NCBI GenBank assembly: GCA_964187785.1
Contig: OZ076413.1
Location: 68,262,001-68,326,000, forward strand
Reading direction: 5' to 3'
Length of the DNA stretch: 64,000 nt
Source of the DNA: Amphiscolops sp. MND2022
Taxonomy: Eukaryota
The notes under the pieces: model-generated
Database searches by the model: none
What the model was told of the DNA's origin: nothing
Seen by the model: the letters and a program-made list of their open reading frames with translations, nothing else
Program-made: the position numbers and the translations under genes
Shown here: in pieces, positions 4,120 through 33,382 of the stretch
How positions within the stretch are numbered: the stretch's first letter is position 1
Layout of the letters: every line of letters begins with the position of its first letter

Positions 4120-4570
4120 ATGCTAAGTTTCCTTCATTACCTTATTATATCATGTTGGAAAACACTTAAACTATTGTGAAATACAAAAGTGAAATACTGC
4201 ATTTCTACAAATTGTAATGAATTATAGTATTTCCTTGAAAAAAATGAAATTTTTATTGAAATAATTGGTGTGGAATCGGCGATATTTTGGTTCCAATCGT
4301 GGCTTCACTTGTAAAGCTTTTTAACGGGGGAAAGGTTTTACAGGTGCTAAGTTTCTTTCATTACTTTACTATATCATGGTGGAATATACTTAGACTATAG
4401 TGAAACTCAATAATGAAATACTACATTTCTACAATTGTAATGAAATTGAGTATTTCTTTGAAAAAAATGAAAAATTTATTGAAATAATTGGTGTGGAATT
4501 GGAGATATTTTGGTTCCAATCGTGGGTTGACTTGTGAGGCTTTTTAACGGGTTAATGGTTTCACAAGGGG
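4120..4570. repeat. Diverged tandem dimer, unit ~225 bp
   Basis: TAAGTTTC(C/T)TTCATTAC...GGTTCCAATCGTGG...TTTTTAACGGG occurs twice in direct succession (~4125 and ~4348). Confidence 0.85.
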
Positions 4571-5249
4571 ATAATAACGAAAAAAGATCCCGAATCGAGA
4601 CAATTACAACAATCCATTTTATGCTTAGTCCTTAAGTTTCAACTGGAACAAATTTAAGATTTTGGAATGAAATTTTTTGAAAACTCCTTCGTACCATCAC
4701 AGCAAATACCATTAGCTGTTTAATTCTTTGTTCAAACTTGGATAAATTTCATCAACTTGCATGGATTGGATTTGAAAGATTTTGGTTTCAATTGTTGGTC
4801 GAAACGAGTTCAATTCAAAAATTGCAAGTTTAATCAAAACGGCTTTTTTGAATGAATGTTTGACAATTTTTTCATCTTGATATATTACATATAATTCTAA
4901 TTCCACGGCACAATCAGCAATGAATTTCAGTTACATTTAGTTGAAAAATACTGCATTTTTATTGGTGGTTACCATGAACTCAGTTAAAGTTTTATTTCAC
5001 CGCTTACGAGTTAACTGGGGGGAGGGGTTAATTCGGCGAGGGGGTTAAAGTTAACAGAGAACATCCCATTGTTTTGTCAAATCCGCTATTCAGCCGCTGA
5101 TCAGTATCAGGGTCGCGTGTCAAGAAGTTTACAGTTCCAACCGTGGGTGATTTCTATTGGCTAGTCAGCGTCGGGTACCAGCGGCTTGTATCAAGCACAT
5201 CGACACATCGACTCACCGGTTTCATTCTCAAACTTGTTTTCCATCTGTT

Positions 5250-8200
5250 ACAAACTGAGTCACCGTTGCAAGCTGTTATCACAAACCAAATTACAGAAGA
5301 CACCCAACTTTTTTGCAGCCGATAAAATTGTCACTCAATCCTAATGGTAAGTTGATAGTTTTGATAACGAAAACTTTTTATAAAGATTAGGCACCAAAAA
5401 TCATAAAATTAAAATTAGTTTCAAATACCAAAAAGAAAATTTCATTTTTATGTTCAGTGGCACCTTTCATTTTCTTTATTTGACACTAAGTTTGATTTTA
5501 TCTTTTCTGCTCTTATGCTGTTTGGGAATTCACTTTTTATAAATTGATTGCAATCTTAGGTATTTTATGTAATTTGCCGTTATTTTGTTTATATTTTTTC
5601 TGATAAAAAGATCAGCTTTGTTTCTATCTTGATTGTTGTTTAAAAAATTGGTTCCAATCGCGGGTCTAATAGGAAACATGTTTTTTTGTTTTAGATGGAA
5701 CTTTTGTTTCTAATTTTGGGTTGGTTTGTTGAAAAACATACTGACAAACTTCGAATAATTTTCCACCAATTTATTCTCAAAAGGTGCATTTTCAAGAAGA
5801 TAGTTCGCTGGGGAGAAAAAACAATTAAAACTTGGCATATTTTCATTTGAAAAACGTACTTCATTATGCGTTTTTTAAGTCGAAGAAGAAGAAAACAGAT
5901 GCAAGTACTTCTCTGCAAGATGCATGTCTCAGCACTTTCCAGGGTATTCGAAACTGCAAGGTCTCTGAATCATCATCAAAATTCTTCCTTGGTAAGTCAG
6001 AAATTTTCAATTTCATCACAAATTTACAGTTTCAAAAAGAAACAATGTTTTTGGAAAGTTCTATTTCAACTAATGAGGGACCCTCCTGGACCATCGGGAA
6101 TTACGTCAACAACCTAATTTACGATTATTAAAAGGAGTGAACTCAACTGAAACGACTAAAAGTGTACCTGAACGTTTCTCTACCTTGCGGCCGTATGATT
6201 TTGCTTTTTAACGTATTTATACTCAGGCCATCTCCGCACAATCGGAACCTCTGACCATTATGCCCCCACAGGAGAAGCCCCCACTGTACATGCTCGCACC
6301 TGCCCTGTGCTGCCAGAAGACAGAAAACGGCAACTCTGTGACGAATTTCGAGATACAACTCCGCCACCTAAAAAAAACGTAAGGATTCCAAATTGCCGTT
6401 TTTGAAATTGTTATTTTTTGACAATTCCAATTAACAAACGACAATCTTCGAATAGTTGCATTGAACTGTTTTGTTGTAACACGTGGAACTGAATTTGATT
6501 TGCGTAAGGATGATAAAAGTCTTCTGTTTATGATTATTTTTTTGATTTTGCACCTCGAATAAGCGGTATTGCTTTGTTTTAAGATCCCCGTGTCCGAATT
6601 GCGACTATGTTGCAGGACGAAAATGGCATTTAACGCGCCATCTTCCGTCATGCAAAAGTGTCAGCAAGCACGAGCAAGTGGCTCAGAATTTGACGTGCGA
6701 GAAGTGTGGTCAGGTTTTCACGACCAAAAAAATGATGACGCAGAAGACCTCAAGGAATTGTAATTTTGTCTTCGACATCAGTCAAAGTTTATTTGGAAAT
6801 AAGATTTCACAAATTTTGTGGTTCCAATCATGGGTCGTTTTAGTTCATGAAAAAATAGTTTTTCTTTTTGACAAAAATGCTTTTAAATTTACAGAAGCCG
6901 CGAAAGGGAAGAGAAGAAGCCCCCACTTTTGCTTTTCGTGTGGGAAGTCCTTTGGGTGCGGATACAGTCTGAGGAACCACATAGCCAGATCATTCCGATG
7001 TCAACTTGACAACCACCGATGCCACTCTATTTGACTTTAAAGTTTGGGACCCCTTCGGCCCCATTGGCAACACGAGAGCACTCCGCATTTTGCAAAAACG
7101 TGCCTCTGGAATGTGGATTTTCCTTTGTTCAGTGGCAGGGACATCATGACAATCAAACTGAACACCTTCTTTCTTCGTCATGGTGTCCCATTGATTTGGA
7201 GAAATGGAGCGAAACACTGTAAAGGACTAAAAATCCCTAAAATATCCGATGAAAAAAGGTTTCGCGACAGAGGGCAAACAACTTCTGCAACCGGCCACCC
7301 TCGCGGAACCTGATGCCCCAAGTGAAATGAAGTCAGCCAAAATCGGATAGGTAAATACAATTTGAACCATGATTAGCTTTGTCAATATTCTGTTTTTCTG
7401 AATGTTTCCAATGAAATGCCTTCGAATTTGAACCGTGTTATGCATTTAGAACAAAACAATTTCTTTCAAAATTGAAAAATCATGACTACACATGTCCTTT
7501 CAAAACATGTCTTCCGCATTGTTTTCTTGAACAATTCGTTTCATACTGAAAATTGGAAGAAACCAGGGCAGTTATATTCTTGCGCAATGTGTATACCGCT
7601 TTGAGTGGAAGTCTGCAATGTATTAGGATTTGTATTTTGTTTCCACTGCACGTGTTTAAAGATATGGTATTGTTTTCCGCATTCACTTCTGACGGAAGGC
7701 GAGTTATATTCAGAATCTGTGGAAACCAAGACATTTGCAAGTTCGCGGAAACAGAGCCTAAAGTTGTTAATCAAATAAAGAGTTTTAAACCCAATTCCGG
7801 AGTCAATGAACGCAAAAATTCATTAGAACCAAGCTATTATCATTCAACACGTTTTGTTACAGGTAAGAGAAATGACGTAAGAAGAGTTTTTCGGTGAGTT
7901 GACCAACTGCGATCCAGAAAACCGAAATCACCCTTTATACGTCATCCTTGCCCTTGTTCTACTTCTTATTATGTCCTGGTCACGCACAATTCTGCGCACA
8001 CGACGTGGCCCCAGGATTATTCTTCGACGTCTGTGTTCTACACTCTTCTAGCTGGAGAGAAGATATTCTTTCTGCTGAAACCGTCGAAGAAAAACCTGAG
8101 CATTTTCGAAGATGGTCGAATGCTGAGAACGACACTACGTAAGTATCAACATTTTCATCTAGCTGACCTTGTCTTCGAAAACACTGTTCTCTTTTCCAAA

Positions 8201-9470
8201 AAACAATTATACTTTTTGGCTACTTTGATAAAAGAAAACGACACCACGGAAGCGTTTAAGGTCATATAACTTTTCTCTCGTTTACTTCTCTTTATGTCAA
8301 AAAAGTCAAAATTAAAGTCGAATTACTTTCAGACCAACATTTTTTGAGAACTTCGATCGGCTGGAAGAGAGATGTTTGCGGTTGCATGTCCAAGCTGGAG
8401 ATGTTCTAGTCATGCCCGCCAACTAACTTCCTCCACTTTGTTCTAACGAAGGACGATGCCATATCTTTGGGAACAAACTTTCTGGCATTCGGACACTTGC
8501 CCATGATAAGGCATTCAATCATCGTCGAGTTACCGAAAAAATCCGATGACAAGTTCCTTGATCTTCCGTAGACATTGGTCCTTCTGATGTACCGTATCGC
8601 GGAAAAACTGTGGCCTCGACTGTGTCGATGCCTTGTGTCACAGTACAGCGCAGTGCAATCATTATACATCGAACAAGCTGCCCGCGAAGTAAGATTTTAA
8701 ACTGTCAGTATTGGTTTTTAACCAAACTTAGTTTTTCTTATTTGAACAACATAGAAACATCTTTCATTTTGGTTCCAATCGAGGGTCGTTTTTTATTTTG
8801 AAAATTTCTGTTTTTGAAAAAGACGTTTGTTTAGTTTTGAACAAAACAGAATTTATCTGTTTCATTTTGGTTCCAATCGAGGGTCTTTTTCTAATTCGAA
8901 AACTTTTGTGTATGAAGAAGTCTTTTCCTATGGTCATTTTCTACATTTACGACTTATATATATCAAGTGAAACACTGCCCGCTGAGTAAAAGTTTGTGAT
9001 TCTACGTCATTAGGTTTATGATACACAAACACTATATCAAGATTATTTGATAAAGTTTTCTGTTCACATTGAAAGTTCGGTTTTTTTCGAAAGTATGAAG
9101 AATTAATTTATATTTTACCAAGCAGCCACCAAGCAGCAGCCGCATTTATATGAACAAGCATGCCGGAAAGAGTGTTGACCCCAGTAAGGCTCTCACAGTA
9201 CCAGCTAATGTGCCCATCGCTGACCCCTACACTAAAACCTATGAAGAAAGGATGACGACAACGGATCTACTAGAACTCGAGTCAACACCGGCAATTATGT
9301 TTACCCATGTCAAAGGAAAGCATGGTAGAACAGTTTTGCCGACACAAACGGTAGATCCGTATTTGCACCAGAAACGTAGCCCCTATGTCGCTGCCACTAC
9401 GGGAAGACGTTCAATCCCCCTTGAACTAGACGTTTTAAATTTGGATCAGTTTCCTTTTCATTTGTATTAG
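5250..9470 (+). pseudogene. C2HC zinc finger x3 + JmjC (KDM7/PHF8-KDM2-like) histone demethylase-like gene, copy 1
   Basis: Spliced frames give CPNCDYVAGRKWHLTRHLPSC, CEKCGQVF and CFSCGKSFGCGYSLRNH, then YVLVTHNSAHTTWPQDYSSTSVFYTLLAGEKIFFLLKPSKKNL (cf. PHF8 [37 protein letters not shown]). GT-AG introns, e.g. 5347-5879 and ~6760-6893. Lesions: HxD His replaced by Pro (8009-8011), a 4-nt AACT duplication at 8421-8428, and stop codons. Confidence 0.8.
7480..7740 (+). repeat. Partial ~165-bp repeat array in a JmjC-gene intron (duplicated at ~12880-13140)
   Basis: Contains CCACTGCACGTGTTTAAAGATATGGTATTGTTTTCCGCATT, homologous to the arrays at 9.7, 15.2, 19.3 and 23.2 kb. Confidence 0.8.
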
Positions 9471-9654
9471 AAAAACACAAATTACCTTACAAGCCGTTTT
9501 ATCCAGTACCAAGCTTAAGTGAGGATGCAAAAAAGAAGAAAAAAATATACACGTTCAAAACATGCTTTGAAACAATTGGGAGATCTAATGCAAAAGTTGC
9601 ACAGAAACTGAAACTTCGTTGTTCTGCTAAAATGTGACACAAATCAGGAGTACA

Positions 9655-10180
9655 CCCCTTCAAGTGAATTTCCGCAATGTATTAAAGTTCGTGTTTGGTT
9701 CCCACTCCATGTGTTTAAAGATATGCCCTTGTTTTCCGCATTGCTTTGAGCAATTCGATTCCTACTGATAAGCGTGGAAACCAGGACACTTATGGTCATC
9801 ACGCGCTATCCTGTGTATACCCCTTTGAGTGAAAGTACGCAATGTATTAGGATTTATGTTTGGTTTCCACGCCATGTGTTTAAAGATATTGCCTTGTTTT
9901 CCGCATTGCTTTCTTTGAGGGAGTCAATTTGTACTGAAAAGCGTGCAAACCAGGACAGTTCAGATTGTCAATTTCGTTTTGGTAAAAATCGAGGGTCGAT
10001 CTTTTAGTGACACGACTGATACATGCATTTAAATGCAAGTAGAAACCACCCTACGACTCTTTTATTCATAAACTACAAAATTTTCATAAAAGGCAAAAAC
10101 TTAACGAAAAAAAAACCTAAAAGTGGCGGATCTTTCCAAAATAATTTGGTTCCAGGACAGTCGAAAGTTCGCTGAAACGG
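9655..10180 (+). repeat. ~165-bp repeat array plus conserved tail module (duplicated at ~15150-15670)
   Basis: (G/A)TGTTTGGTT(C/T)CCAC(T/G)CCATGTGTTTAAAGATAT at 9691 and 9856 (period 165), followed by AATCGAGGGTCGATC...CTACGACTC...TGGTTCCAGGACAGTCGAAAGTTCGCTGAA. Confidence 0.9.
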
Positions 10181-10649
10181 TGCCTTTTTTTACTAAGGAG
10201 CATCACAGGAAACCTAATGCTATGATTTAGGAATTTATTGAAAAGATTCAACAAGTTCGGATAACACTTGAACTAGAAGAGAGCCTTGATACAAAAACAT
10301 TATTGTTTAAAAGTGCCATCACGGTATTTTTCGAGAGCGGCAATTGCAGAAACACCTTCACCCAGTGTGAGTTACCATGAATTCAGTTAAAGTTTTATTT
10401 CACCGCTTACGAGTTAACTGGGGGGTTAATTCGGCTAGGGGGTTAAAGTTAACAGAGAACATCCCATTGTTTTGTCAAATCAGCTATTCAGCCGCTGATC
10501 AATATCAGGTTCGCGTATCAAGAAGTTTACAGTTTCAACCGAGGGTGATTTCTATTGGCTAGTCAGCGTCGCGTACCAGCGGCTTGTATCAAGCACATCG
10601 ACTCATCGACTCACCAGTTTCGTTCTCAAACTTGCTTTCCAACTGTTAC

Positions 10650-13600
10650 AAACTGAGTCACCATTGCAAGCCGTTATCACAAACCAAATTACAGAGGACA
10701 CCCAACTTTTTTGCAGCCTATAAAACTGTCACTCAATCCTAATGGTAAGTTGATAGTTTTGATAACAAAAACTTTTTATGAAGATTAGGCACCAAAAAGC
10801 ATAAAATTGAAATTAGTTTCAAATACGAAAAAGAAAATTTCATTTTTTTGTTTAGTGGCATCTTTCATTTTCGTTATTTGACACAAAGTTTGATTTTTTA
10901 TTTTCTGCTCTTATGCTGTTTGGGAATTCACTTTTCATAAATTGATTCCAATCTTAGGTATTTTATGTAATTTGCCGTTATTTTGTTTATATTTTTTCTG
11001 ATAAAAAGATCAGCTTTTTTTCTATCTTGATTGTTGTTTAAAAAATTGATTCCAATCGCGGGTCTAATAGGAAACATGTTTTTCGTTATAGATGGAACTT
11101 TTGGTTTTAATTTTGGGTTGGTTTGTTCAAAAACATACTGACAAACTTCGAATAATTTTCCACCAATATATTCTCAAAAGGTGCTTTTCAAGAGGATAGT
11201 TCGCTGGGGAGAAAAAACAATTAAAACTTGGCATATTTTCAATTGAAAAACGTACTTCATTATTCGTTTTTTAAGTCGAAGACGAAGAAAACAAATGCAA
11301 GTACTTCTCTGCAAGATGCATGTCTCAGCACTTTCCAGTGTATTCGAAGCTGCAAGGTCTCTGAATCATCATCAAAACTCTTCCTTGGTAAGTCAGAAAT
11401 TTTCAATTTCATCACAAATCTACAGTTTCAAGAAGAAACAATGTTTTTGAAAAGTTCTATTTCATATAATGAGGGACCCTCCGGGACCATCGGGAAATAC
11501 GTCAACAACCTAATATACGATTATTAAAAAGAGTGAACTCAACTGAAACGACTAAAAGTGTACCTGAACGTTTCTCTACCTTGCGGCCGTATGATTTTGC
11601 TTTTTACCGTATTTATACTCAGGCCATCTCCGCACAATCGGAACCTCTGACCATTATGCCCCCACACGAGAAGCCCCCACTGTACATGCTCGCACCTGCC
11701 CTGTGTTGCCAGAAGACAGAAAACGGCAACTCTGTGACGAATTTCGAGATACAACTCCCCCACCTAAAAAAACGTAAAGATTCCAAATTGCCGTTTTTGA
11801 AATTGTTACTTTTTGACAATTCCAATTGACAAACGACAATCTTCGAATAGTTGCATTGAACTGTTTTGTTGTAACACACGGAACTGAATTTGATTTGTGT
11901 AAGAATGGTAAAAGTGTTCTGTTTATGATTATTTTTTTGATTTTGCACCTCGAATAAACGGTATTGCTATGTTTTAGGATCCCCGTGTCCGAATTGCGAC
12001 TATGTTGCAGGACGAAAATGGCATTTAACGCGCCATCTTCCGTCATGCAAAAGTGTCAGCAAGCAGGAGCAAGTGACTCAGAATTTGACGTGCGAGAAGT
12101 GTGGTCAGGTTTTCACGATCAAAAAAAATGATGACGCAGAAGACCTCAAGGATTTGTAATTTTGTCTTCGACATCAGTCAAAGTTTATTTGGAAATAAGA
12201 TTTCACAAATTTTGTGTTTCCAATCATGGGTCGTTTTAGTTCATGAAAAAATAGTTTTTCTTTTTGACAAAAATGCTTTTTAATTTACAGAAGCCGCGAA
12301 AGGGAAGAGAAGAAGCCCCCACTTTTGCTTTTCGTGTGGGAAGTCCTTTGGGTGCGGATACAGTCTGAGGAACCACATAGCCAGATCATTCCGATGTCAA
12401 CTTGACAACCACCGATGCCACTCTATTTGACTTTAAATTTTGGGACTCCTTCGGCTCCATTGGCAACACGAGAGCACTTCGCATTTTGCAAAAACGTGCC
12501 TCTGGAAAGTGGATTTTCCTTTGTTGAGTGGCAGGGACATCATGACAATCAAACCGAACACCTTGGTATTCGTCTTCGTCATGGTGTCCCATTGATTTGG
12601 AGAAATGGAGCGAAACACTGTAAAGGACTAAAAATCCCTAAAATATCCGATGAAAAAAGGTTTCGCGACAGAGGGCAAACAACTTCTGCAACCGGCCACC
12701 CTCGCGGAACCTGATGCCCCAAGTGAAATGAAGTCAGCCAAAATCGGATAGGTAAATACAATTTGAACCATGATTACCTTTGTCAATATTCTGTTTTTCT
12801 GAATGTTTCCAATGAAATGCCTTCGAATTTGAACCGTGTTATGCGTTTAGAACAAAACAATTTCTTTCAAAATTGAAAAATCATGACTACACATGTCCTT
12901 TCAAAACATGTCTTCCGCATTGTTTTCTTGAACAATTCGTTTCATACTGAAAATTGGAAGAAACCAGGGCAGTTATATTCTTGCGCAATGTGTATACCGC
13001 TTTGAGTGGAAGTCTGCAATGTATTAGGATTTGTATTTTGTTTCCACTGCACGTGTTTAAAGATATGGTATTGTTTTCCGCATTCACTTCTGACGGAAGG
13101 CGAGTTATATTCAGAATCTGTGGAAACCAAGACATTTGCAAGTTCGCGGAAACAGAGCCTAAAGTTGTTAATCAAATAAAGAGTTTTAAACCCAATTCCG
13201 GAGTCAATGAACGCAAAAATTCATTAGAACCAAGCTATTATCATTCAACACGTTTTGTTACAGGTAAGAGAAATGACGTAAGAAGAGTTTTCCGGTGAGT
13301 TGACCAACTGCGATCCAGAAAACCGAAATCACCCTTTATACGTCATCCTTGCCCTTGTTCTACTTCTTATTATGTCCTGGTCACGCAAAAATCTGCGCAC
13401 ACGACGTGGCACCAGGATTATTCTTCGGTTCAGTTCTACACTCTTCTAGCTGGAGAGAAGACATTCTTTTTGGTGAAACCGTCAAAGAAAACGCTCAGCA
13501 TTTTTGAAGATAGTCGATTGCTGAAAACGACACTACGTAAGTATCAACATTTTCATCTAGCTGACCTTGTCTTCGAAAACACTGTTCTCTTTTCCAGAAA

Positions 13601-14950
13601 ACAATTATACTTTTTGGCTATCTTCTTTGATAAAAGAAAACGACACCACGGAAGCGTTTAATGTCATTTAACTTTTCTCTCGTTTACTTCTTTTTATGTC
13701 AAAAAAGTCAAAATTAAATTCGAATTACTTTCAACCAAATTTTTTTTTACCAACATTTTTCGGGAACATCGATCGGCTGGAAGAGGGATGTTTGCGGTTG
13801 CATGTCCAAGTTGGAGATGTTCTAGTCTTGCCCGCCAACTTCCTCCACTTTGTTCTAACGAAGGACGATGCCATTTCTTTGGGAACAAACTTTCTGGCAT
13901 TCGGACACTTGCCCATGATAAGGTAGTCAATCATCGTCGAGTTACCGAAAAGATCCGATGATAAGTTCCTTGATCTTCCGGAGATATTGGTCCTTCTGAT
14001 GTACCGTATCGCGGAAAAACTGTGGCTCCGACTGTGTCGACGCCTTGTGTCACTGTACAGCGCAGTGCAATCATTATACATCGAACAAGCTGCCCGCGAA
14101 GAAAGATTTTAAATTGTCAGTATTGGTTGTTAACCAAACTTAGTTTCTCTTATTTGAACAACATAGAAACATCTTTAATTTTGGTTCCAATCGAGGGTCG
14201 TTTTTCATTTTGAAAATTTCTGATTTTGAAAAAGTCGTTTGTTTAGTTTTGAACAAAACAGAAACTATCTGTTTCATTTTGGTTCCAGTCGAGGGTCCTT
14301 TTCTAATTCGAAAACTTTTGTTTAAGAAGAAGTTTTTTCCTATGGTCATTTTCTACATTTACGACTTATATATATCAAGTGAAACACTGCCCGCTGAGTA
14401 AAAGTTTGTGATTCTACGTCATTAGGTTTATGATACACAAACACTATATCAAGATTATTTGATAAAGTTTTCTGTTCACATTGAAAGTTCAGTTTTTTCC
14501 GAAGGTATGAAGAATTAATTTGATTTTTACGTTTTACAGGTGCTACCCGATTTCAGTGCTGAAAACCTTGGCATCGCTGTGGGCAAAAAAGAGCCTCAGT
14601 GGCACTGCGTGAGCCACCAAGCAGCAGCCGCACTTATATGAACAAGCATGCCAGAAAGAGTGTTGACCCCAGTAAGGCTCTCACAGTACCTTGCTGACCT
14701 ATCGCTGCTGACCCCTACACTAAAACCTATGAGGAAAGGATGGCGACAACGGATCTACTAGAACTCGAGTCAAAACCGGCAATTATGTTTACCCATGTCA
14801 AAGGCAAGCATAGAAGAACAGTTTTGCCGACACAAACGGTAGATCCGTATTAGCACCAGAAACGTAGCCCCTATGTCGCTGCCACTACGGGAAGACGTTC
14901 AATCCCCCTCGAACTAGACGTTTCAAATTTGGATTAGTTTCCTTTTGATT
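10650..14950 (+). pseudogene. C2HC zinc finger x3 + JmjC histone demethylase-like gene, copy 2
   Basis: Keeps WHQD (His 13410-13412, Asp 13416-13418), the GEK lysine and LPANFLHFVLTKDDAISLGTNFL (distal His 13846-13848; cf. [23 protein letters not shown]). Damaged by loss of the acceptor AG near 13735 and a TAG at ~13923. Confidence 0.8.
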
Positions 14951-19120: not shown

Positions 19121-19249
19121 CTCTCACTCGTAATTAGAAAATTTCATTTCTTTATATCGTTTGTTTTATCTTCCGAAAGTGTTCTACGAATTAAAATACT
19201 CAAAACTTATTGAAGAAAAAGAAAAACAAAAATGGATGGATTTTTATTT

Positions 19250-22138: not shown

Positions 22139-22580
22139 AACATGACGTCTCGAATAGGGCAACGGTCAAACGTCCAATGCTCCCACCAGTTGATATGGTA
22201 ATTTTACGAAAACTTGATTAAGTATTGTTTAAATTTTCGCTCCAATTGAGGGTCATGTTTCGCGGAAACCAGTTTACTTTTTAATTCCTAGATGATACGT
22301 TGTCAGTTTTAAATACTTTTTAAATTTTTCTAAATTACTTGTTCAAATACTTCTTCAAATGGACATGACATCTCGAATAATGTAGCGTTCAAATGTCCAA
22401 TGCTCCCACAAGTTGATACGGTAATTTTAGGAAAACTTGATCAAGTATTGTTCAATTTTTCGTTCCAATCGAGTGTCAAGTTTCGCGGAAACTATTTTAC
22501 TTTTTAATTCCTATATGACACAATATCAGTATTAAACACTTTTTGAAATTTTCTGAGTTACTTTTCCAATTTCTCTTCAT
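22139..22580 (+). repeat. ~222-bp tandem duplication spanning the end of exon 1 and the start of intron 1 of the YR-SET gene
   Basis: ACATGAC(G/A)TCTCGAATA...TCCAATGCTCCCAC...GGTAATTTTA.GAAAACTTGAT.AAGTATTG occurs at ~22140 and ~22362. Confidence 0.85.
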
Positions 22581-23139
22581 TTTTGTAGATTGTTCTTGCC
22601 AAGAAGAAGAAGAAGTCTGACTACAAAACGGATACAGTTAGGTCCTTCATTGAATGGACAATAACAGAAAAAAAAGTCACGTTGTAGAAAGAACATTCTG
22701 TCTGTCAAAAAGTCCAAATAGACTTCTTTCGAAATCTACTGGCCTACGTTTTGATTTTCTTGGATTTTCTGGATCGGGAGGTCAGCAACGTGACTGTTCA
22801 GGCCGTGATGCAGGCTGTAGTTCAGATGAAAGAATCAGACAGCAAAAAGAACTCTTTCGTGCTTGAGATACATGTAGCAGAGAGGTGCGTCAGAAAAACT
22901 TGCTACAATATCCCACGATGGTTATTGGAAGGCGTTGTTGATTACTATGTGAGTGTTCGAAGCGAGTTTTCGACCCACGGCGAGGGATCTCCTTTCGAAA
23001 AACTTCTGAGTGAGACAGACGATCGAATCCTGCACACCGAATTGTTTTTTTGTGAACTTAGCTGGGTAATCCAATTTCCGACCTAGCCACGTTGTTGACC
23101 AGTATATGGAGTCGGTATGTATGATCAAATCATGACCAC

Positions 23140-23750
23140 ACCCCTTTGAATAAAAACAAGTCATGGATACGGCTATGTGGTTTGGTTTCCACGTCATGTG
23201 TATAAACATACAGTATTGTTTTCGGCATTGGTTTTTTTGAGCAAGTCAGTTTATACTTAAAAACTATAGAAACTAGGAAAGTTATAGTCACGCGCAATCC
23301 TGTGCCCCTTTGAGTGAAAGTACGCAATGTATAAAGTTTTGTGTTTGGTTTCCTTGCCATGTGTTTAAAGATATGTCCTTGTTTTTCACATTGCTTCCTT
23401 TGAGCAATTCGAATCTTTCTGGAAAGCGTTGAAACCAGGACACTTATGGTCACGCGCTATACTGTGTATACCGCTTTGAGTGAAAGTACGCAATGTATTA
23501 GGATTTGTGTTTGGTTTCCACGCCATGTGTTTAAAGATATGGCCTTGTTTTTCGCATTGCTTTCTTTGATCAAGTCAATTTATACTGAAAAGCGTGGAAA
23601 CCAGGACAGTCCAGATTGTAGATTTCGTTTTATTAACAATCGAGGGTTGATCTATTTCTGACATATTACATGCATTTAGAGTGCAAATAGACACTATCCT
23701 ACGACTCTTCCAAAAAATGCAAAAACTTCAACAAAAAAACCAAAACTGAA
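23140..23750 (+). repeat. ~165-bp repeat array (about 3 units) plus truncated tail in the YR-SET intron
   Basis: Unit starts at ~23177, 23341 and 23507. Confidence 0.9.
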
Positions 23751-25389
23751 ACTTAGTACTTCTTTAACAAGTACTCAAACACTGCGACAGTCCGCTGTGG
23801 GAATTGGAACGGCGAGTTCAAATTGTGCTGCCCGTGGCAAACAACACTGAATCAATACTCCCGAATTGAAGGTCCAAACAAGAGCAATCTAGGAGACTCT
23901 GGACATTGCCTGGGATTACCAGATCATGCAGTCGGCGATGAGAAGGCACCAGGATCGCCAGCGATATGCCCGCCAATCAGCTCGTGCCCATGCTTTTTTC
24001 AAGCACATGAATGGGGAAGCTGACCTTGTTTCGTTGGATATGCGACTCAAGAGTTATTTTCAGCGACAGAAATGGACCACACAAAAGACTGCAACCAAGA
24101 CCTGAGAAAAGTTTATTTACTTGTGTTGCCCATGTTTATCACTCCCGAAGTTGAAACGAACGTAGCAATTCAAAAGAATTATTATAAAGGATTTGCGAGC
24201 AACATGGAGTTTGAAGACCAAACTCTGCTCATGGAGAGAAGTCGATCTCAAAACTGGCCCAGAGTCACACAGGTTCTTTTCAGCAAGTTCGGACGGAAAA
24301 TTGTTGCAACCAGAGTGTTTCAGAAAAAAGAAGACGTCATTGATTACCACGGGCCGTTTTTCACGAAAAAGTCATTGGATGAAGTATCCGCCATTGAAGT
24401 TGTTAAACGGTAGTTATGTCTCGAAGTGAAAGGACCTGGCCGAGGAATAATCAATGCCTCTAAGGAAACGTGCCCGGTCCACCCTGATAGTAGATGTATG
24501 GGTCGTCTTGCCAATCACTCACTTGTGGAAGCCAATGTGAAGTCCACTGACGTCATTGTGTTTGCTGACAACAACCAACGTGATGTTGTCCTCCGAGCCA
24601 GCAGAACAATTCATCCCTTCGAACAATTAATGTTCGACTGCGAGGATCTGATAGCTCGCTCTGAGTTCAGTGAATCACAGTCAGGAAGCAGCTCTGGAAA
24701 CACCAGCGGTCGCTTCAGCGGTAGTCAAGAACCAAGAAAAGAAAACAGTGTCAATCTTGCAGATGAATCGGACGAAGAAAATTGACGATGAAAGCGAACT
24801 TTCATTCATAAACTTTTAGACTTTTGTGGCATTGGTCTTATTGTACGTGATTGTTTAAATTGCTGTTACTCAGTTTCAACTGGAACAATTTTGAGATTAA
24901 AATGCTGACGAAAGCTTGAACTTGTTTTTAAATCATTTCAAATCAGTTTTTGTAACACTTGCAACGCTATGCAAATTATAATTTTGGTTTGAAGAAGTCA
25001 ATTACGTTGTAATCATAATCACATTTGAGTGCAACAAGTGTTTCAAAAGACTTCACACCAAAAGTTACATCACAAGCACGTTGATAATCAGAATTAAAAG
25101 AAAACGTACTGCAAAAAGTTACAAAATGTCACAAGTTCAATTGTAAGTCTAAAAACTAGGTTTTAGCACGTATTGCTTTCCATTTTTGCTTGGATCTTTT
25201 GATCAAATGAAATAAAAATGAAAGATTAAAACGCAACTGTTTTTGAGAAAACAATTAAAATTTTGGTGCCAGTCGTGGGCCGAGTTGTGATGCTTCATTT
25301 CATAAATAACAAAATCAATCGAAATATGTGCGTTTTTGAGTTTGATTTAATATAGCGACAGACAGGATGAACTGATAGACAGAAAAAAC

Positions 25390-25646
25390 GGATGCAGTGG
25401 CGCAGTGGACCTTCAATTAGGCCCTCTGAAGTCTTTTACCGAATCGATCAGGGGACAATACAGAGTTGTCTGTATTGAGTCGCCTGGCAGAGTGTTTTGA
25501 TGGGGATCGATCCGTTGACAGACTACGCCGCAACCTTCACTACTCGCCTTATCAACTGCGCCACCATCCCCGTTAGGCCGTTGCAATGGACACATTTATA
25601 AACTTTTGTTTGATGAACTTGATTACCAACCACTGCGCCGTCATCC
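25390..25646. mobile_element. Possible small MITE
   Basis: GGCGCAGTGG (25399-25408) and CCACTGCGCC (25630-25639) are inverted, with an imperfect outward extension GGATG.../...CATCC. No TSD seen. Confidence 0.35.
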
Positions 25647-25667
25647 ATATGACACTTAAAATGCAAG

Positions 25668-28600
25668 CTTAGAACATAGCAAGCGAGCTAGTGAGCGGTC
25701 GCGCTATGTCAACAAACAAATTCAACACTGCGCAACAATGCGTAACGAACAAATCTCAACTGAAATCATGAAAACTATAAAGTGCGGAAATTTTTTCAAA
25801 AATAAACCAAAAAACACAAATGATCCAGAAAGTACTTCAGAAAAGACTGATTATTCTGAACAATTCTCATCATTGAATCAAAATGCAAACGATACTCAAC
25901 CAGGGACTTCATCTTTATCCATTACTATTCTTTGGAAGAATCCCAAGCAGGACTACCGGGCAGTCGTTACCAATTTGAGCCCGAATTTCACCAGAGTACA
26001 AAAATTGTTTCGAATGAAAAATTTTCCTCCCTTTACTCGTACGCATTTACAAACTACTGAAAAACTACAAACGAGTGTTATGTTGCTATACTCTGGAGCT
26101 TCTCTCCAAGATTGCGACCGATTATAACGATTGCAAAAACTCACACAATCATTGGCAACCATAAGCTGCAAACCTGCATGGTTACTGCCCCCATAGAAGC
26201 AGAGGAAGAAGTGGCAAACATGCAGCTTACAGTACTACAAAGTCTAAATCGTACAATCCTTCCTACCGCTGACGAAAAATAGCGGTACAGCCTATCCATG
26301 TATTCACAAAGTTCACTTTACGGATTGAAGGATTAGCAATCTTATGCGGTGATGAAGAATTGCTTGGGGTGATTCAGATGCCATGCGGAGACATTCTTTC
26401 AGAAATTAACAGGCACTCAGTTACAACAGAAGTCGGAGTGGTCTACACTGGAACAACTCATGCAACACTCCAATTCAAAAGCGAAGAGGAAAAGAATATC
26501 CTAAAAGACTGGTCCAGAGCCAATGGTATTTTTGATACTTCTGATACAACGAATTGACATGTAATTACCATCATAGCACATGTACCACGACTTCATTCCT
26601 GCTCAATCTGTTCAACGCAGACAGGATGCGAATCTTTTGGAAACGATGAAGCATGAAGACCAGTCATCCACGTCCTGTAGAACCAATTGAAAAGAGAATT
26701 GCAGCTGATGACAATGATGAACAAATAGATGAGAACAATACACCACTGAATGAACGAGACAATAACATTGAACTAGAGGATGGAGAGATCGAACCAGATG
26801 AAGGAGACAATGAACAAGAAGATTGTTCATGGTATGAACAAAAGAGAAACCACAGTAAAAAAGAAAAGGCTCGGGTGCTAACCCCATCTTCTACGCCAGC
26901 AAAAAACAAGTTTCAAGCATTTGCAGATGAAACTTCCATCTCTCACCAAACTTCACCACGCAACAGATGTCCGATCCCACAAAAACAACTCTTTAACGGA
27001 TAGTATGGGGGTTTTTAGTCTAAATTGTAGAGACCTCGGCTCTAGCCAACGACTCATTGAGGTATGTTCTCTAGTCAATAGGGCTAAACACGCTGATTCT
27101 TTTATAATTTCACTTCAAGAAACTAAACTTTCGGAAATCAAAAAACAACACTTGAAAGTTATTGAAACTGAAAAGTTGAAATACATACCAACTCCTTCCG
27201 TAGGAGCATCGGGCGGGCTCAGATGCATTTTCCCAGAGAGAACTCATGCACACAAAAATGCTGAATGTAGCGATTGTCAAGCAATACACTCGATTCGTGA
27301 AAACATACTAATTTTGAACTCATATATTACCCCGAAAGATACATCCTTGACTAGCTTCATGAGCTTCATGAAGGACTTGGATTTATGAAAGTTCAAGCAA
27401 GTGTATCTAGTGGGAGACTATAACGCGATTTGTCCAGTAGATTTTCTTCTGAAATCAAAACACATGACAAACGACTACTAAAGTATACAAAACTTACCTC
27501 CACTCTAAATTCTTTTGGTTTCCGCGATCTGGCAAAAAAGAACTCTCCCGTTTCTCCCACACCTTACGACAAACGTATCAAACAATGGTCTCGACTAGAT
27601 TTTATCTACTGCTACCCGTCTAAGCATAATAAATTCTTGACTTCATACAAACGTCTTTTTCAGACCATATATTACTTTCTGCATATGAGCTCACCGATGA
27701 TGACTACGGCACAAACATCTGGAAACGAGATCACTAAGTGCTCCAAAACAAAGATAAAATTTCGGAAATTTTGAATTTCTACTTTAAAAGAATGAAATCT
27801 ATAAATTCAACCCAATACGAGTTATTCGAAGCTCGTTTACACTGCTCCCTGAAAAAACTTAACATACAAGTAATACAAGTTAAGCGACAAAGGAATGAAC
27901 ATGAAAAAAGTTTGCTCTCGAAAAAAACCCAACTGGAGAATATCATTTTGTCCGAAAGAAATAATGAAATGATTTCCCAATACGAACAAGCTGTGAACGA
28001 GCTTCGCTCTTATCGTTTTTCAAGATACCAGAGTAAAGGAAACTTGATCAAAGGTTTCTACCGAGACGTGAATGAAGGCGATCCGAAAGCTACGAAAAGT
28101 ATGTTAACTTCTAGACGTAAAAAAGCAACATTAAAATGCTGAAAACTGATGAAGGCGAAATACTTACGGAACAAACACAAATCTTAAATTAGATTCAAAA
28201 ATGGTATGAGAAAACATCGAAAGAAAACCTTTTTAATCTTTCTAATGGGACAACACCTGAGAGAATTGTGGACATTCAGGCGTCGTACATAGAAAAATAT
28301 GTACCTGTACTTTTTCGAAACTCATCTGTCTTTAATGAAAATAGCACTGAATATGAAGTCAGTAAGGCTATATCGAGACTTAATCAAGTTAGCGTTCCTG
28401 GACCTGACGGTCTCACCGCCAAATTGTAAAAATCAAATATAGATTTTTTTGCTCCGTTACTCACAGAACTATTCAATAAAATTAGTGAAACAAAACTCCA
28501 TGCTCAGTTTTCAATTATTAAACTTTTACCAAAAAAATCCACATCTGTAGAAATAGGCGATTTTCGCCCACTGAGCATGATGAACACTGACCAAACAATT

Positions 28601-30387
28601 CTGTCACATATCTTGTCTGAAAGAATTAAAGTATCGGTATCGGAAGTGGTAGGCAGTCATCAAACGGCCTGTTTGCCGAATAGAAGCATCCATACAACAC
28701 TGTTGAAAATTCGAAAAAAAAGCTAGCATAGTCATGATTGAATTCAGCAGTGCATTTGACAGAATAAATCGATTCCTTCTGATGCAGATTGTGGACAAGC
28801 TCAACATCAATGATATTACTAAAAAACAAATTAGGCTTATGTATGGAGAAACAATCTGGTTTGTTAAATTGAGCGGTTTTTGTCGCTTCCAATATTAATT
28901 GAAAGGGGTGTTAGACAAGGATGTTCGCTATCTGCTCTTCTATTCGACGTCGGTCTCGAACCTTTGTTACGTCAGATACAGTCAGATAAAGAGATAGTCT
29001 CCGAAAACGACCAAACCATCCTTGCTTATGCTAACGATATAACTGCGGGAGATATCATTGACTCGCTTCCCCGTCTTTTTGCTGACTTCGACCACTTCAA
29101 GCCCATTTCAGGATTGGAGATTATTGACACCAAAACTGAAACAGCCACCAATGGCATACTACCTGAAAATATTACTCCGTCAAAAACTATTGCAGTTCTA
29201 GGAGTACCTATTTGGCCCACTAACCATGATACCCGCGTTTCCGGTAGTCTCATGATACCCGCGTTTTATAGCCGAAATTGCTAGAATAGCTTCTCGATAT
29301 GCCCTGCAGTCCATGTCCTACAAAGCCAGATCAAAAAACATCGAAGTCTTTGTAACTTCCAAACTTGTTCATAGACTGAGACATCCTAATAATCGAAAAA
29401 AAACTGACGGGGAAATTGAATCGCGACCTAATTAACCAATTCTGGCAAAATAAAAAATATAAAGTCAATTCTGAGATCATACACTTGGATTTGAACGAAA
29501 GTTTTCTCAGGCTCAAAAACCTTCCAATTTTAGTTACAGCGTGTAAAATCATGGACTCGAAGGAATTTCACTTCCAAGAGCAAAATCGGTATCTAGTAGA
29601 AAACATTTTCGGGAGCTCTTTTTTTTCTCAGCGAAAGATTTAAAGTTGAATGCAGAAAGAAAAGAATTTTGGAAATCAGAGACCACAAACTGATGATTAA
29701 ACAAGGAGGCCTCGAAAAAAAATTACAGCAGATACAAAACCAGAGAAAGTTATAGCTTTCTGATAGATTTTTGTATCCGAACAAAAGCGATAGATAGGTT
29801 TTCTGAAGGCGCTCAAAAATTAATCATGAGAAAAGAAAACTTAATACTCTTCGTTCAAAAGTTATGGAAACTGGAATCTTTGCTAGCTTTCCAAAAAAAC
29901 ATTATTTATTATCTTCTGATGGGAAGTATCATAGATAAACCAGAAAAGTGGTTAAGAAACTTAGTCCCTCATCCCATTTGCTTCCAATGCGATGAAAAAA
30001 TTGAAACGTTTCATCACTTGATCATGGACTGCAGAAAAACGCGGGGTTTACGCAATGATCTCCAAATACGAAATTGGAAGTTTTTCTCCAACGACAGGGC
30101 CTCTTTGAAACCTAAATTCTTAGTATCAATATCGTATGCTCATGGACTGAAAAGCCAATAAACATTCAATATTTAATAAACGAACTTAAGAAAGATTAGG
30201 CTAAGTTTTTTCCTAGAGAACACTTTTTCAATACCTTCGAAATTGTTGAATTTTTCTTTCTTGACGTTAGTTGGTGTTTGACATTGTGCTTGATATCATG
30301 TTTTAAAGTTGTAAGTTATTTTGTTTATGATACTCTTAACTCTTAACCATTAACCATGATTACAAAGTAATCTATTTTTTTTGAAAT
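25668..30387 (+). mobile_element. L1/Tx1-clade LINE, near full length, inactivated
   Basis: ORF1-like region 25.7-26.95 kb. ORF2: SLNCRDL, LQETK, GASGG, NSYITP and LVGDYN (APE); PGPDGLT, FRPLSMMNTD, AFDRI, GVRQGCSLSALLF and AYAND (RT, YADD decayed); CFQCDEKIETFHHLIMDC (C-terminal CCHC). Many stops and frameshifts. Confidence 0.88.
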
Positions 30388-30736
30388 CTTAAAAGAATGC
30401 AAGTGAAAAGATTTTGGTTCCAATTGTGGGTCGAATCGTCATAATTCAATTTCTTATTAGAGTTGAACTTCGGAATAGCGTACTGTCAGAATAAATTAAC
30501 TCATGTAGTTACGTAATCGTTTGTCGTGACCTATAAAAAATAGTATTCTATAAGCGTAATAATTATTCAAAGCAGCATCAGGGACTGTAGTTTTTTGCGC
30601 CGCTAAAATCGCATAATGAGCCCGTAGTTTTGAGAATGCGAGTCAAAGCGCATAATCGAGCGCATATCCTGCTCTTTTTGATGTTGCTACACAAAAGCTT
30701 TTAGTTTATTAGCAAATAGATATCGTTCAAAAAAAC

Positions 30737-30805
30737 CCGTTGGCCAAATAGGATGCGTGCTAGCTTTCCGATCGTAAGATCGTAGGTTCCGATCCCGCTA
30801 ACGGC
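30737..30805 (+). mobile_element. tRNA-like sequence, probably a tRNA-derived SINE head or tRNA pseudogene
   Basis: CCGTTGG/CTAACGG can form a 7-bp acceptor stem. A-box-like TGGCCAAATAGG and B-box-like GGTTCCGATCCC. Anticodon and T stems do not pair properly. Confidence 0.4.
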
Positions 30806-33382
30806 AAATATTCAGAAAAGACTGCCTGAATTTATTTGTATTTTTACCATCAAATGTATTTCAAAGAGCTTTGAAAAAATGCAAGAAAAGCTAGCCGTTG
30901 TTTTTTACTGTTTGGTAAATTTACTATATAATTTTTGTTCTTTTGCCAACCAAAGCCTAATTTTGAATTCTTCCTGAGCATCATTGCCTCTATTGAATAA
31001 AGCATTAAATCCTTTGTTTCCAACCGAACTTTAGATACCGAAAATTACAGTCTTATCATGATGGAAAAGAATTAGAAACAACGCTTACGGATCTTTTCTG
31101 TTAATCCCCCCACTAACTTATTCCACTTCAGTTGATGGTCAAGAAAAATTATCAGTGAATTAATAGTAATGATCAATCAAATAGCAGTATTTTCTATAAC
31201 TGTAATTCATCGCTGATAGTGGTTGGAAATGAAATTTCTGCGCATACTGCGTGGGGGAGGGTTTGCGGAATATTCAACGAAAAAGACCATCTTTAAAAAA
31301 AGCTCATTTTTCTACCAACTGTAATGAAATTGAACAAAAAGGAAAATTTTAATGATATAATTGGTGTGGAATTGGAGATATTTTGGTTCCAATTCTGGGT
31401 CAAAACGTGAAGCTTCATTTAACAGAAGTTTGTTTCCGAGCACTATCTCTTCTAGCAATTTTCATCTGTCTTCAAGAGATAAAATATTATTAATATATAT
31501 ATTATTATGAGCGGAAACATATTATTATCGATCCGGAATGTGGGTGTACGAATTACTCTACTGAATAAAATTCAAGAATCTGAGACACTTTGCACTATTT
31601 GCTCTCTACATAATTGTCCCTATTGAGGCCTGGCATAAGTGGCAATTAATTGGCCCCATTAACTTGCCAAGACACAAAAATGCGGAAAGTAAGGAAGCTA
31701 AGGCAGTCGATATCAAAGGGGAATGAGCTCAGTGCACGCGTCTCAGTTTCCGAGATTTCATCAGTGCCACTACATCCTTAAGGGGAAGATACTACACAGA
31801 GCAAAAGACCAAGTTGAAGCTCTCAGAATTGAAGACAAACTGGAATAACTCGATGAGAAACAAACTTTCTTGGTTGACAAAAAAGTTTTGGAGAACTTGA
31901 AACTCGTTCTGTGGTGAATTTCAAAACACCTTCTGGAAAAGTGCTGCAAAAACACAGACAGTTTTTACAATCAGTTCTCGACGCAGCATGACTAAAAACA
32001 ATTTCTGGAGCAAAACATTTTCTTTTGACTGAGAATCCACAGCATCACTGAGAATCTTGAGAAAAAACCAGAAGACGTTGTACCAATACATAAAAAGGAG
32101 ACCGGGAAACTCAGAAAGATACGTAGAAAAATTGATCGAGGACTCAAAGATTACGGCGTGATTCCAGATAATTTGAGAATACAGATCTTTGAATTTTTCA
32201 ACTACGGGCAAAATGTCCTACCGACTAATGACGTGGAAACCGACTGATCATTTCACATCAACATGCTCTTTTTAAAAACTGGAGGGTCTCTGGAAAGCGG
32301 AAAGTGGAAAAAACAATTGCAATAGTTTTCAGCTAAAACAATGTCATTTGGTTGTGTGAAACTTGGCTGGATTCGAGTGTAGAAGACTCTCAACTACAAC
32401 TGAAAGAGTGCAAACTCTATCTAACAAACATTCCTTTTTGAAAGGTACTCCTTTCCATAAAGGTTCTCTAATCGCAGTGAAAATGCACGTGTATCCAAAC
32501 ATGTGGACATCGAAATATCTGACTGCTGTGAAGCCGGTTTCATTGCAGTGGATAAATTTATCCTGTGTGCACTCCACAACCCAAACGATGATAGCAAATA
32601 TTGTTTCGAAAAAACTGACTTTGAAAAAAAACTCCATTTTAAACTTCAATCAGGCCACAATCGTCTGTTTTGACATGATTTTGTCTACCATGAACTGAAA
32701 CATGTTATGCATCACCGACGTCTATGACCCAAATGTCAAAGCGTTCTTTGATCAGCACCTGCTTCGACAGATTGTTGACTTTCGTACTTGTTCAAAAAAG
32801 AACTGACTTGTTCTTCCACAGGATATGTGATATCTTGTCTTAAACTGATGAAGACTTCACGATGAACTTCAACATTGCAATTCTCATATCAAAGCAAATG
32901 AGACTCAAATGCTCGCATAGTCAACAGAAACATTTTTATGGAGAGTATCGAAGCTACGAGACTGACAAATTTAACAAAATCACAAACTTTACGCCAAACC
33001 AAAAATATTTCAAGCGTTTGAATTTTCTCAACAAAACCAACCGCCTTCACAAATTTATTTCCTAGGTGGCGCTATCAGCAGTTCGGAAAACAAATGAGCT
33101 CGCTTTTTCGTTGAAAGTCTCCACTCAGTCTTCTCCCCGAAACAATCATACACCCTGATTGATATCCGAAACGTAGAATCAAACTTGACGAAGTTTGAAG
33201 TCTCAAAACAAAAAATCTGAAAATCTGCACTAATCTATATTTCACCAAAGCAAGAAGTTCAAACAAATTCCTTCCAGTACATGTCGCAGGGATATCCGTG
33301 CGAGGTGTCCGGAGTGCAACGTAATTGAAGCAGTCAACGCCAGCATCATGATGCTTTAACACGTAATTTTGCTTGTAATTTA

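Follow-up and report, generated by a model that had tools for sequence, protein, structure and literature searches.

The giant Plavaka transposons of red algae, 17-19 kb in length, carry a CACTA-group transposase of the DDE (aspartate-aspartate-glutamate) type together with PAG1, PAG2 (N6-methylase plus SET), PAG3 (ParB plus a 2-oxoglutarate (2OG) oxygenase) and tandem repeats (bioRxiv 10.1101/2025.02.11.637652). The function of PAG1 is unknown, and the ParB-2OG protein and the adjacent repeat arrays have been proposed as a pair in red-algal Plavaka (bioRxiv 10.1101/2025.02.11.637652). Judged by its components, giant Plavaka appears to be the closest precedent for a locus in Amphiscolops sp. 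MND2022 that we analyzed within a stretch of 64,000 nucleotides of contig OZ076413.1 (assembly GCA_964187785.1, positions 68,262,001 to 68,326,000 of the forward strand), referred to below as the window. Window positions 3672 to ~31762 are very likely a copy, now dead and rearranged, of a giant DNA transposon of the cut-and-paste kind, in which a transposase gene, here called X, is accompanied by a cargo of a SET-domain gene (SET), a JmjC-domain gene (JmjC) and a gene called P.

The present element and giant Plavaka are both giant DDE transposons of the wider CACTA/Transib group and both measure 17-19 kb (the present one when its nested insert and internal duplication are set aside). Both combine a SET gene, a 2OG oxygenase bearing a DNA-binding module at its N-terminus, a gene without known function and tandem repeats in the interior, and in both most copies are degenerate and the accessory genes shift between arrangements. 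They differ in that the oxygenase here is of the JmjC type with C2H2 fingers, not a ParB-fused 2OG enzyme; that the SET protein, which is SET8-like, lacks an N6-adenine methylase domain, Pfam having found no ParB domain either; that the transposase has a BRCT-like tail; and that the host genome looks animal, not algal. The likeness is one of parts list.

SET genes also occur in oomycete HarbingerS and MuDR elements, and TET/JBP dioxygenases in several fungal transposon lineages (PMC12730594). Like the present element, these are DNA transposons with a captured epigenetic-mark enzyme, for which a role in countering silencing has been proposed, but they belong to other transposase superfamilies, carry one accessory gene, are much smaller and reside in fungal or oomycete hosts. 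Arabidopsis VANDAL (Mutator) elements encode the anti-silencing protein VANC, as cited in bioRxiv 10.1101/2025.02.11.637652 and PMC12730594. There, a self-encoded factor is thought to bind its own motifs and alter its own chromatin, and a co-oriented 17-mer in the present element invites the same model; VANC, however, is not a SET- or JmjC-class enzyme, and the 17-mer is a candidate binding motif. No described animal transposon with this gene set was found in the literature searched, a partial coverage that is not proof. The original prediction knew of no described animal transposon that combines all of these genes; the red-algal, oomycete and fungal precedents make the idea less unprecedented than it supposed. 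The present element differs from them in uniting a transposase of RAG1-like fold that is unclassifiable by sequence and has a BRCT-like tail, a SET8-like writer, a JmjC eraser and P in an animal-type host.

Extent, ends and copies of the element

The element was delimited by comparing loci within the source assembly (European Nucleotide Archive (ENA) assembly ERZ25074608, ~100x coverage per contig). A protein search with the largest open reading frame (ORF) of X returned 14 relatives, all in ENA and on contigs from ERZ25074608; locus L003 is the window's own locus, with 99.1% identity over 21 kb. The window, L001 and L035/L036 make up family C, L002 and L004 family B, and L005, L007-L017 and further copies family A, which is young. 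By this comparison a decayed giant DNA transposon copy spans window 3672 to ~31762 (Table 1), a length of ~28 kb, or ~18 kb without a nested long interspersed nuclear element (LINE) and an internal 5.4-kb tandem duplication. The window DNA is AT-rich (GC ~38%) and has no N.

Table 1. Features of the transposon copy, in window coordinates
Feature	Position	Strand	Remarks
Left terminal inverted repeat, CATTACAGTGCATAGGCAAGC	3672..3692	+	JmjC/X side of element; L001 homology begins exactly there
Subterminal region	3672..4109	+	83% identity to L001 19272-18834; left flanks unrelated
223-bp tandem repeat, 2 copies	4121..4565	+	Tandem Repeats Finder (TRF); 17-mer at 4289 and 4512
JmjC unit copy 1	5024..10421	+	C2H2 zinc finger and PHF8/KDM7/KDM2-type JmjC; decayed
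JmjC copy 1 coding blocks	6579-6731, 6816-7007, 7013-7262, 7945-8110, 8319-8568, 9138-9437	+	
JmjC unit copy 2	10422..15860	+	Tandem duplicate, ~95% identity to copy 1; repeat families D2-D14, 5.4-kb spacing
JmjC copy 2 coding blocks	within 11974-14922	+	
165-bp modules	7508-7737, 9637-10040, 12909-13138, 15131-15530, 19249-19640, 23141-23690		Repeat analysis
165-bp module	19249..19640	+	2 units plus motif-carrying tail
Gene X	15881..18339	-	Aligns to residues 357-1131 of intact 1170-aa relative, frames -1/-2/-1
Gene P ("PHD-like" in the original prediction)	20082..21464	-	Broken by stops and frame changes
Second 223-bp tandem repeat, 2 copies	22135..22570	+	Upstream of SET gene; 17-mer at 22238, 22461
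SET gene	22619..24785	+	N-terminal region without domain match, then SET8/KMT5A-like SET domain; decayed
Right non-coding arm, proximal piece	24786..25667	+	82-83% identity to L035 1494-1012
Nested LINE	25668..30393	+	Pfam RVT_1 and zf-RVT; missing from related copy L035/L036
Right non-coding arm, distal piece	30394..31762	+	83% identity to L036 11353-12686

In family A, four copies agree at 99.9% up to a single base (L014:18930, L015:15131, L016:11843, L017:9232), beyond which their flanks are unrelated: a long terminal repeat (LTR) retrotransposon, a Maverick-like region, the region of a Pygopus-PHD gene and a gene-poor stretch. The final 20 bases of these copies, CTTGCCTGTGCACTGTAATG, recur inverted at window 3672-3691, where L001 homology starts and the left flanks of the window and L001 part. 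The terminal 20-21-mer is also present at L005:17634 and at L004:1405, the latter being the SET-side end and the exact beginning of the block common to L002 and L004; diverged versions lie at L036:12739 (5 mismatches), where a family C copy ends on its SET side, and at L001:19272 (4 mismatches). Because this ~21-bp sequence is present inverted at both kinds of end, it represents terminal inverted repeats, of the form 5'-CATTACAGTGCA...TGCACTGTAATG-3', i.e., 5'-CATTAC...GTAATG-3'. With CATTAC...GTAATG at all recovered ends, the element resembles the CMCT clade (EnSpm/CACTA, Mirage, Chapaev, Transib, Plavaka, ESTA, Lanisha), which shares 5'-CA...TG-3' termini (PMC12730594).

On the right, the L035/L036 copy joins window 25667 directly to 30394, giving a LINE-free right arm; because the LINE is absent from this related copy, it is a later insertion and lies outside the element proper. 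L036 runs ~55 bp further, to CTTGCAGATGAACTGTAATG, and then enters unrelated flank, the window diverging already at ~31762. A near match at 31316-31326 was rejected as the window's right terminal repeat, since homology to L035 continues beyond it. The window copy can no longer move, because its X, P, SET and both JmjC genes are disrupted and it has lost one terminal repeat.

The element is studded with repeats of its own. The 17-mer GGTTCCAATCGAGGGTC (≤3 mismatches) has 18 matches in the window, between 2061 and 31385 and all on the + strand, with none at 31.8-64 kb and none in shuffled sequence; the 13-mer CCAATCGAGGGTC (≤1 mismatch) has nine, again all on the + strand, versus 0.06 expected. 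At loci flipped relative to the window every 17-mer match lies on the other strand, so that the orientation of the motif follows the element, not the genes. A ~165-bp unit occurs 11 times in six modules of 1-3 tandem units (7508 to 23690), four of the six having a tail that bears the 17-mer motif, and is absent from the remaining window and from ~24 kb of non-element flanks at other loci. The L001 counterpart of the 223-bp array is longer (17400-18670). Positional conservation of the 165-bp modules between families was considered and found to be only partial, the module in the window SET gene missing there in families A and B.

All four genes are present in three families (A, B and C), whose synonymous sites are mutually saturated. 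L002 carries SET, P, X and JmjC in window order and L004 carries SET, P and X; the P-SET pair is inverted as a block in L005 and L014, and in family A JmjC is located beyond P (L007 18098 to 14488). Clusters of X and P at 90% identity comprise 93, 128, 72, 77 and 54 member sequences, an individual sequence being present on as many as 13 contigs. Across all 21 kb retrieved, seven family A loci show 97-99.6% identity, and they have intact X ORFs of 1070-1248 aa; near-identical copies hold intact reading frames for X, SET and P, with JmjC interrupted. Several of the contigs examined end within the element. The copy at L018 (10001-20441) is an internal deletion derivative of ~10 kb, in which JmjC is followed by X within 2 kb and P, SET and a 244-aa ORF are missing; a PDB sequence search with the 244-aa ORF gave no useful match.

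These comparisons bear out much of what had been proposed for the locus. The same gene set at many loci with different flanks points to one mobile unit, as predicted; the order and orientation JmjC(+), X(-), P(-), SET(+) were correctly read, as was the decay of the copy, evident in the stop, frameshifts and mutated motif of X and in the breakage of both JmjC copies, P and SET. The motif is private and co-oriented (18/18 on the + strand, with none at 31.8-64 kb or in shuffles), and the ~165-bp module, likewise called private, was found only inside element copies and not in other flanks. The predicted extent, 4120-31430, was nearly right and is replaced by the longer span given above; the tandem duplication of the JmjC unit and the nested LINE had been overlooked. 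A constant gene order holds for L002, but not for the inverted P-SET pair or for the displaced JmjC of family A. Introns had been assigned to all four genes and fit JmjC and probably SET, but X and P are single ORFs broken by mutation, and the labels "PHD-like" and "YR" (tyrosine recombinase) for P and the SET gene found no support, as set out below.

The transposase and its companion genes

X is an intronless single ORF of ~1070-1248 aa in intact copies, the length spread arising because the copy number of a 39-bp tandem repeat varies. This repeat, of 13 aa, was observed at the X N-terminus in the young family (L007 1417-2176, and the same place in L008-L014). The window copy is broken by stops and frameshifts: an in-frame stop at 17870-17872 follows the first motif, frameshifts lie near 17300 and 16880, and both Glu residues of the otherwise invariant ExxEKSNH motif read Gly. 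Other older copies each have different X frameshifts and stops. An exhaustive HMMER search yielded 240 representative X relatives, none informatively named, among them uninterrupted ORFs of 1000-1300 aa on short ENA, Logan and JGI contigs.

For the structure of X, we used an AlphaFold model of the X homologue P0019, built from a 36-sequence alignment (mean predicted local confidence, pLDDT, 79.5; predicted TM-score, pTM, 0.69). Foldseek returned 45 PDB matches at E ≤1e-3, comprising 39 to mouse or zebrafish RAG1 core, four to Helicoverpa Transib and two to P element transposase. The best was 6cim_A (E 2e-6, probability 1.0), and the 32 best, 31 RAG1 core and one HzTransib, had E values of 2e-6 to 3e-4 at probability 1.0. 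The target TM-score of the model reached 0.52, with 550-770 aligned columns, and Hermes was a far weaker structural match than RAG1/Transib. The invariant motifs of X are D-x-x-G-D, S-G-D and E-x-x-E-K-S-N-H, with the catalytic residues D370/D374 (18/18 in alignment A2), D454 (26/26) and E744/E747 (33/33). Between D454 and E747, D525, H528, R532, E535 and H741 are invariant; cysteines 521 and 523 are partly conserved with C-x-C spacing, and neither a C(2)C nor an H(3-4)H could be made out clearly. The motifs parallel what we take to be D600-x-x-G-D604, D708 and E959-x-x-E962-S-G-N in RAG1 numbering.

At the C-terminus of X, Pfam BRCT_2 matched three full-length homologues below its cut-off (E 3e-4 to 7e-4, 20-21.5 versus 27.3 bits), and the X profile weakly matched the BRCT region of DNA ligase IV (E 0.19); residues 844-916 of the P0019 model are predicted to form alternating strands and helices. 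Pfam gave no BRCT match in the window X ORF itself. A RAG1/Transib-type DDE fold for X is thus supported by predicted fold and motifs, not by sequence-family membership, and the prediction of a RAG1/Transib transposase with BRCT stands in the first sense and not in the second, the BRCT part being a weak signal.

The likeness to Transib, RAG1 and the RAG-like (RAGL, ProtoRAG) transposons extends from the predicted fold, which matches RAG1 core and the Helicoverpa Transib transposase, and the parallel D-x-x-G-D, second-Asp and E-x-x-E-(K/S)-(S/G)-N motifs to the termini, which are 5'-CA...TG-3' and contain ACAGTG, which resembles the heptamer of Transib and of recombination signal sequences (RSS). 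The terminus, however, begins with CATTAC, not CAC; X is set apart by the want of a sequence-level match and by its BRCT-like C-terminal region; and the element carries chromatin enzymes. Unlike in RAGL elements, no Kelch/RAG2-like gene adjoins X, the neighbors being SET, P and JmjC, of which P has no Kelch Pfam or propeller match. In size, too, it exceeds typical Transib elements, about four- to sixfold.

The window SET gene matches Pfam SET at 24426-24785 just below the curated cut-off (E 2.6e-4, 21.8 versus 22.4 bits). Three blocks of the gene (22688-23083, 23757-24410 and 24414-24683) are conserved in L002, L004, L005 and L014; in the window an in-frame stop at 24411-24413 separates two same-frame fragments, and, compared with family A, the gene is split by the 165-bp module at 23141-23690. 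The distant locus L006 has an intact SET homologue, for which Pfam SET scores 2e-11 and the top 14 PDB matches are KMT5A/SETD8 (E ~1e-6), so that the predicted SET8/PR-Set7 type is supported by the best solved relatives of this homologue. The upstream part of the gene has no Pfam match in the window, L014 or L006, and its N-terminal ORF no PDB sequence match; the second recombinase that had been read into it finds no tyrosine recombinase signal by Pfam or PDB sequence search.

The JmjC gene starts with two C2H2 fingers (Pfam zf-C2H2). A phmmer search of its JmjC blocks against PDB found PHF8 at 1.5e-6 and also KDM7, PHF2 and KDM2A; the Pfam JmjC match itself is marginal (E 0.05). In copy 1 the first Fe-binding His is replaced by Pro (WPQDY versus WHQDY elsewhere) and a frameshift lies at ~8420 within VMPAN/FLHF. 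In copy 2 the HxD (WHQDY) and the FLHF His remain, but the HxD block has undergone a small deletion and MIR is followed by an in-frame stop. L001 and L002 share WHQDY and FLHF with window copy 2, and the HxD...H ligands are kept in three families; together with the PHF8/KDM7/KDM2-like PDB matches, this agrees with the HxD...H enzyme originally proposed. A GT-AG intron lies at the same junction (FE[KR]W/PTFFG) in families A and C. The dN/dS ratio (nonsynonymous to synonymous substitution rate) of the two window copies against each other is 0.74.

P is a single-ORF gene, interrupted in the window by mutation; protein-level matches were found in L002, L004, L005 and L006, and all families conserve the gene. 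Pfam searches of the window pieces, L005, L014, P0183 and L006 gave no match, nor did PDB searches, that with the P profile included. The AlphaFold model of P is poor (pLDDT 52) and yields nothing significant with Foldseek, the weak hints being BAH, chromo-barrel and eIF5A-type SH3 barrels, all at E ≥0.02. The PHD finger assigned to P found no support in these searches: Pfam found no PHD, a Cys-rich stretch at ~21100 is present in some families only, and the best hints from the model are the barrels just named.

Relatives outside the assembly carry parts of the same set. On L006, a contig of 10.5 kb from an unrelated run (Logan ERR15087781), SET (419 aa), X (1301 aa) and P (452 aa) lie side by side as intact genes without introns, at 22-35% amino-acid identity to the window versions; no convincing inverted repeats were found in this contig, and it probably does not include element ends. 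Relatedly, the P0050 contig has a SET ORF divergent from X, i.e., SET-X linkage again, and X relatives are present on seven further short metagenome contigs. No X relative was found among 2.9 million viral contigs, which speaks against an integrated virus-like element (a giant-virus fragment or Polinton relative). Such an origin would suit the large size, the compact intronless ORFs of L006 and the Maverick-like double-jelly-roll (DJR) capsid gene that adjoins copy L016, but we find it scarcely credible: the common unit has no capsid, polymerase or packaging gene, the DJR gene lies past the terminus in a flank that is peculiar to L016, and terminal inverted repeats with a DDE transposase are transposon hallmarks.

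Between families, dN/dS was 0.10-0.32 for X, P, SET and JmjC where dS was estimable, and nonsynonymous differences per site (pN) were far below synonymous ones (pS); by this measure, all four genes have evolved under purifying selection. This bears on whether the transposon is real and its chromatin genes passive passengers, i.e., captured host gene fragments without a role. That gene order and orientation vary by family (P-SET inverted in L005/L014, JmjC on the other side in A), that units duplicate and rearrange easily, that JmjC is disrupted in a young amplifying family and that its GT-AG intron resembles a captured host gene would all fit passengers. We nevertheless consider this unlikely, given dN/dS values of 0.1-0.3 for SET, P and JmjC across families with saturated synonymous sites, the continued linkage of SET and P to X in L006 at 22-35% identity with ORFs intact, and the conservation of the JmjC HxD...H ligands in three families.

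Several results weigh against a giant cut-and-paste transposon with functional cargo. Pfam found no RAG1 or other transposase family in X window pieces, paralogues or full-length homologues; neither the X profile nor X pieces matched RAG1 or Transib among PDB sequences; and identity in the structural alignments of X with RAG1/Transib is only 9-12%. The right terminal repeat and last ~55 bp of the window copy were not found anywhere in the window, and no single locus was recovered with both ends, hence no target-site duplication was read. The P-side end of the young family was not found by a further 10-kb walk and a terminal-repeat scan; on that side the young family runs into a nest of LTR-retrotransposon pieces common to copies, and part of its spread could have occurred by duplication of larger blocks. 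A 1.7-kb insertion splits the JmjC His exon in young family A and, because this exon is interrupted in a young, apparently active family, JmjC is dispensable for spread. Lastly, the roles of SET, JmjC, P, BRCT, motif and modules are all ones that we infer.

Carried further, duplication of blocks would make the locus a cluster of ordinary host genes (JmjC, P, SET and a domesticated gene of RAG1-like type) spread by segmental duplication, which could account for blocks of at least 21 kb being common at 97-99.6% identity, for the missing P-side boundary and for the LTR-retrotransposon sequence beyond JmjC that is common to copies. We judge it very improbable, in that four copies stop at the same base and then meet unrelated flanks, other copies have the 21-bp end, inverted, on their opposite side, sequence variants number dozens to hundreds and most older copies are independently disabled, and relatives lie on short contigs from unrelated samples. 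A dead copy of a giant transposon remains our preferred reading.

Other repeats and genes in and around the window

Other sequences were noted inside the element and at its edges. The nested LINE has ORF1-like sequence upstream of RVT_1/zf-RVT. A stretch resembling the head of a tRNA-derived short interspersed nuclear element (SINE), GGATGCAGTGGCGCAGTGG..., lies at 25360-25650; it is common to L035 and therefore was already in the family C element. ARAGORN found no tRNA genes in the window, the SINE-like stretch included. To the left of the terminal repeat, outside the element, 1411-2500 is a fragment of the 5' part of the JmjC unit (86% identity to 4968-6000, with one 17-mer motif copy at 2061) and is probably the remnant of another same-family copy adjoining the insertion. 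A 146-aa ORF adjoins the JmjC side of young copies (L018, L019 and L024 at ~7150-10450; L020-L023) and occurs in direct repeats 6.9 kb apart around integrase ORFs and in inverted pairs 2.4 kb apart; it probably lies within an LTR, that of a Ty3-type retrotransposon which the giant element either carries along or repeatedly chooses as its target. The L016 flank (11844-16426) has one ORF resembling a double-jelly-roll capsid gene and another with an endonuclease VII domain, and looks like a Maverick/Polinton-type element beside the insertion.

Animal-type genes occur near copies of the element (ShK, cystine-knot, Pygopus PHD), and it is these few that mark the genome as animal-like. In the window, 43473-45098, with a ShK domain, VWC-like repeats and a C-terminal cystine knot/DAN, is likely a host gene for a secreted cysteine-rich protein. 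Inverted repeats with 137-nt arms, 94% complementary, lie ~17.5 kb apart at 42040-42341 and 59558-59858, with relatives at 40243-40511 and 60180-60288 and in L001 and L002; they are another repeat family and may mark the two ends of a further large element. Two copies of a gag-like ORF at 47242-48755 and 51867-53714 (222 and 333 aa, Cys/His knuckle-like motifs being present in the longer) are embedded in direct repeats 4.96 kb apart at 97-98% identity and look like a retroelement duplicate; Pfam found nothing for the 333-aa ORF. The window also has a near-perfect palindrome at 60718-60938 (110-nt arms, 98% complementary, 1-nt gap) and a direct repeat at 33772-34071 and 35799-36098 (2027-bp spacing, 99% identity).

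A putative mechanism and its implications

SET8 makes H4K20me1 (monomethylated lysine 20 of histone H4), and PHF8/KDM7 enzymes remove H4K20me1, H3K9me1/2 and H3K27me2. In the mechanism that we propose, X would bind the terminal repeats and excise and reinsert the whole unit by DDE chemistry, possibly via hairpin intermediates as in RAG and Transib, and its BRCT-like tail may engage the host double-strand-break repair machinery. The SET protein would add, and the JmjC protein remove, methyl groups on histone lysines at the element or near it; the C2H2 fingers of JmjC, P or X might be directed to the element by the co-oriented 17-mer and the repeat modules, an arrangement that would have its counterpart in the ParB-2OG protein and neighboring repeat arrays proposed for Plavaka of red algae. 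Such targeting could keep the element transcribable or help to prepare or repair transposition sites.

More speculatively, the copies may represent an undescribed lineage, possibly a superfamily, of RAG1/Transib-fold animal transposons that is still active and has a matched H4K20me1 writer and eraser (SET8-like and PHF8-like), the partner P and co-oriented binding motifs. The suggestion of continuing activity comes from 99.9%-identical copies that carry intact 1170-aa transposase genes. We hold this wider view tentatively; if it is correct, the element would set its own chromatin state or manage the repair of its own double-strand breaks, and would be a free-living parallel to the dependence of RAG1 on the histone-mark-reading RAG2. 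Natural intact copies of X, SET and P could be assayed without reconstruction, JmjC needing another copy.

Long-read assemblies are broken by elements this long (at least 21-28 kb) and this similar (98-99.9% identity), which also shape genome structure. A RAG1-fold transposase without detectable RAG1/Transib sequence similarity would widen the known diversity of the enzyme class that gave rise to V(D)J recombination, in which RAG1 puts antibody genes together, and chromatin enzymes in the place of RAG2 bear on how such transposases couple to histone marks. Finally, that a giant DNA transposon in an animal-type genome bears the package of SET, 2OG oxygenase and a further gene without known function, following the cases from red algae, fungi and oomycetes, suggests an anti-silencing strategy that recurs and is possibly convergent.

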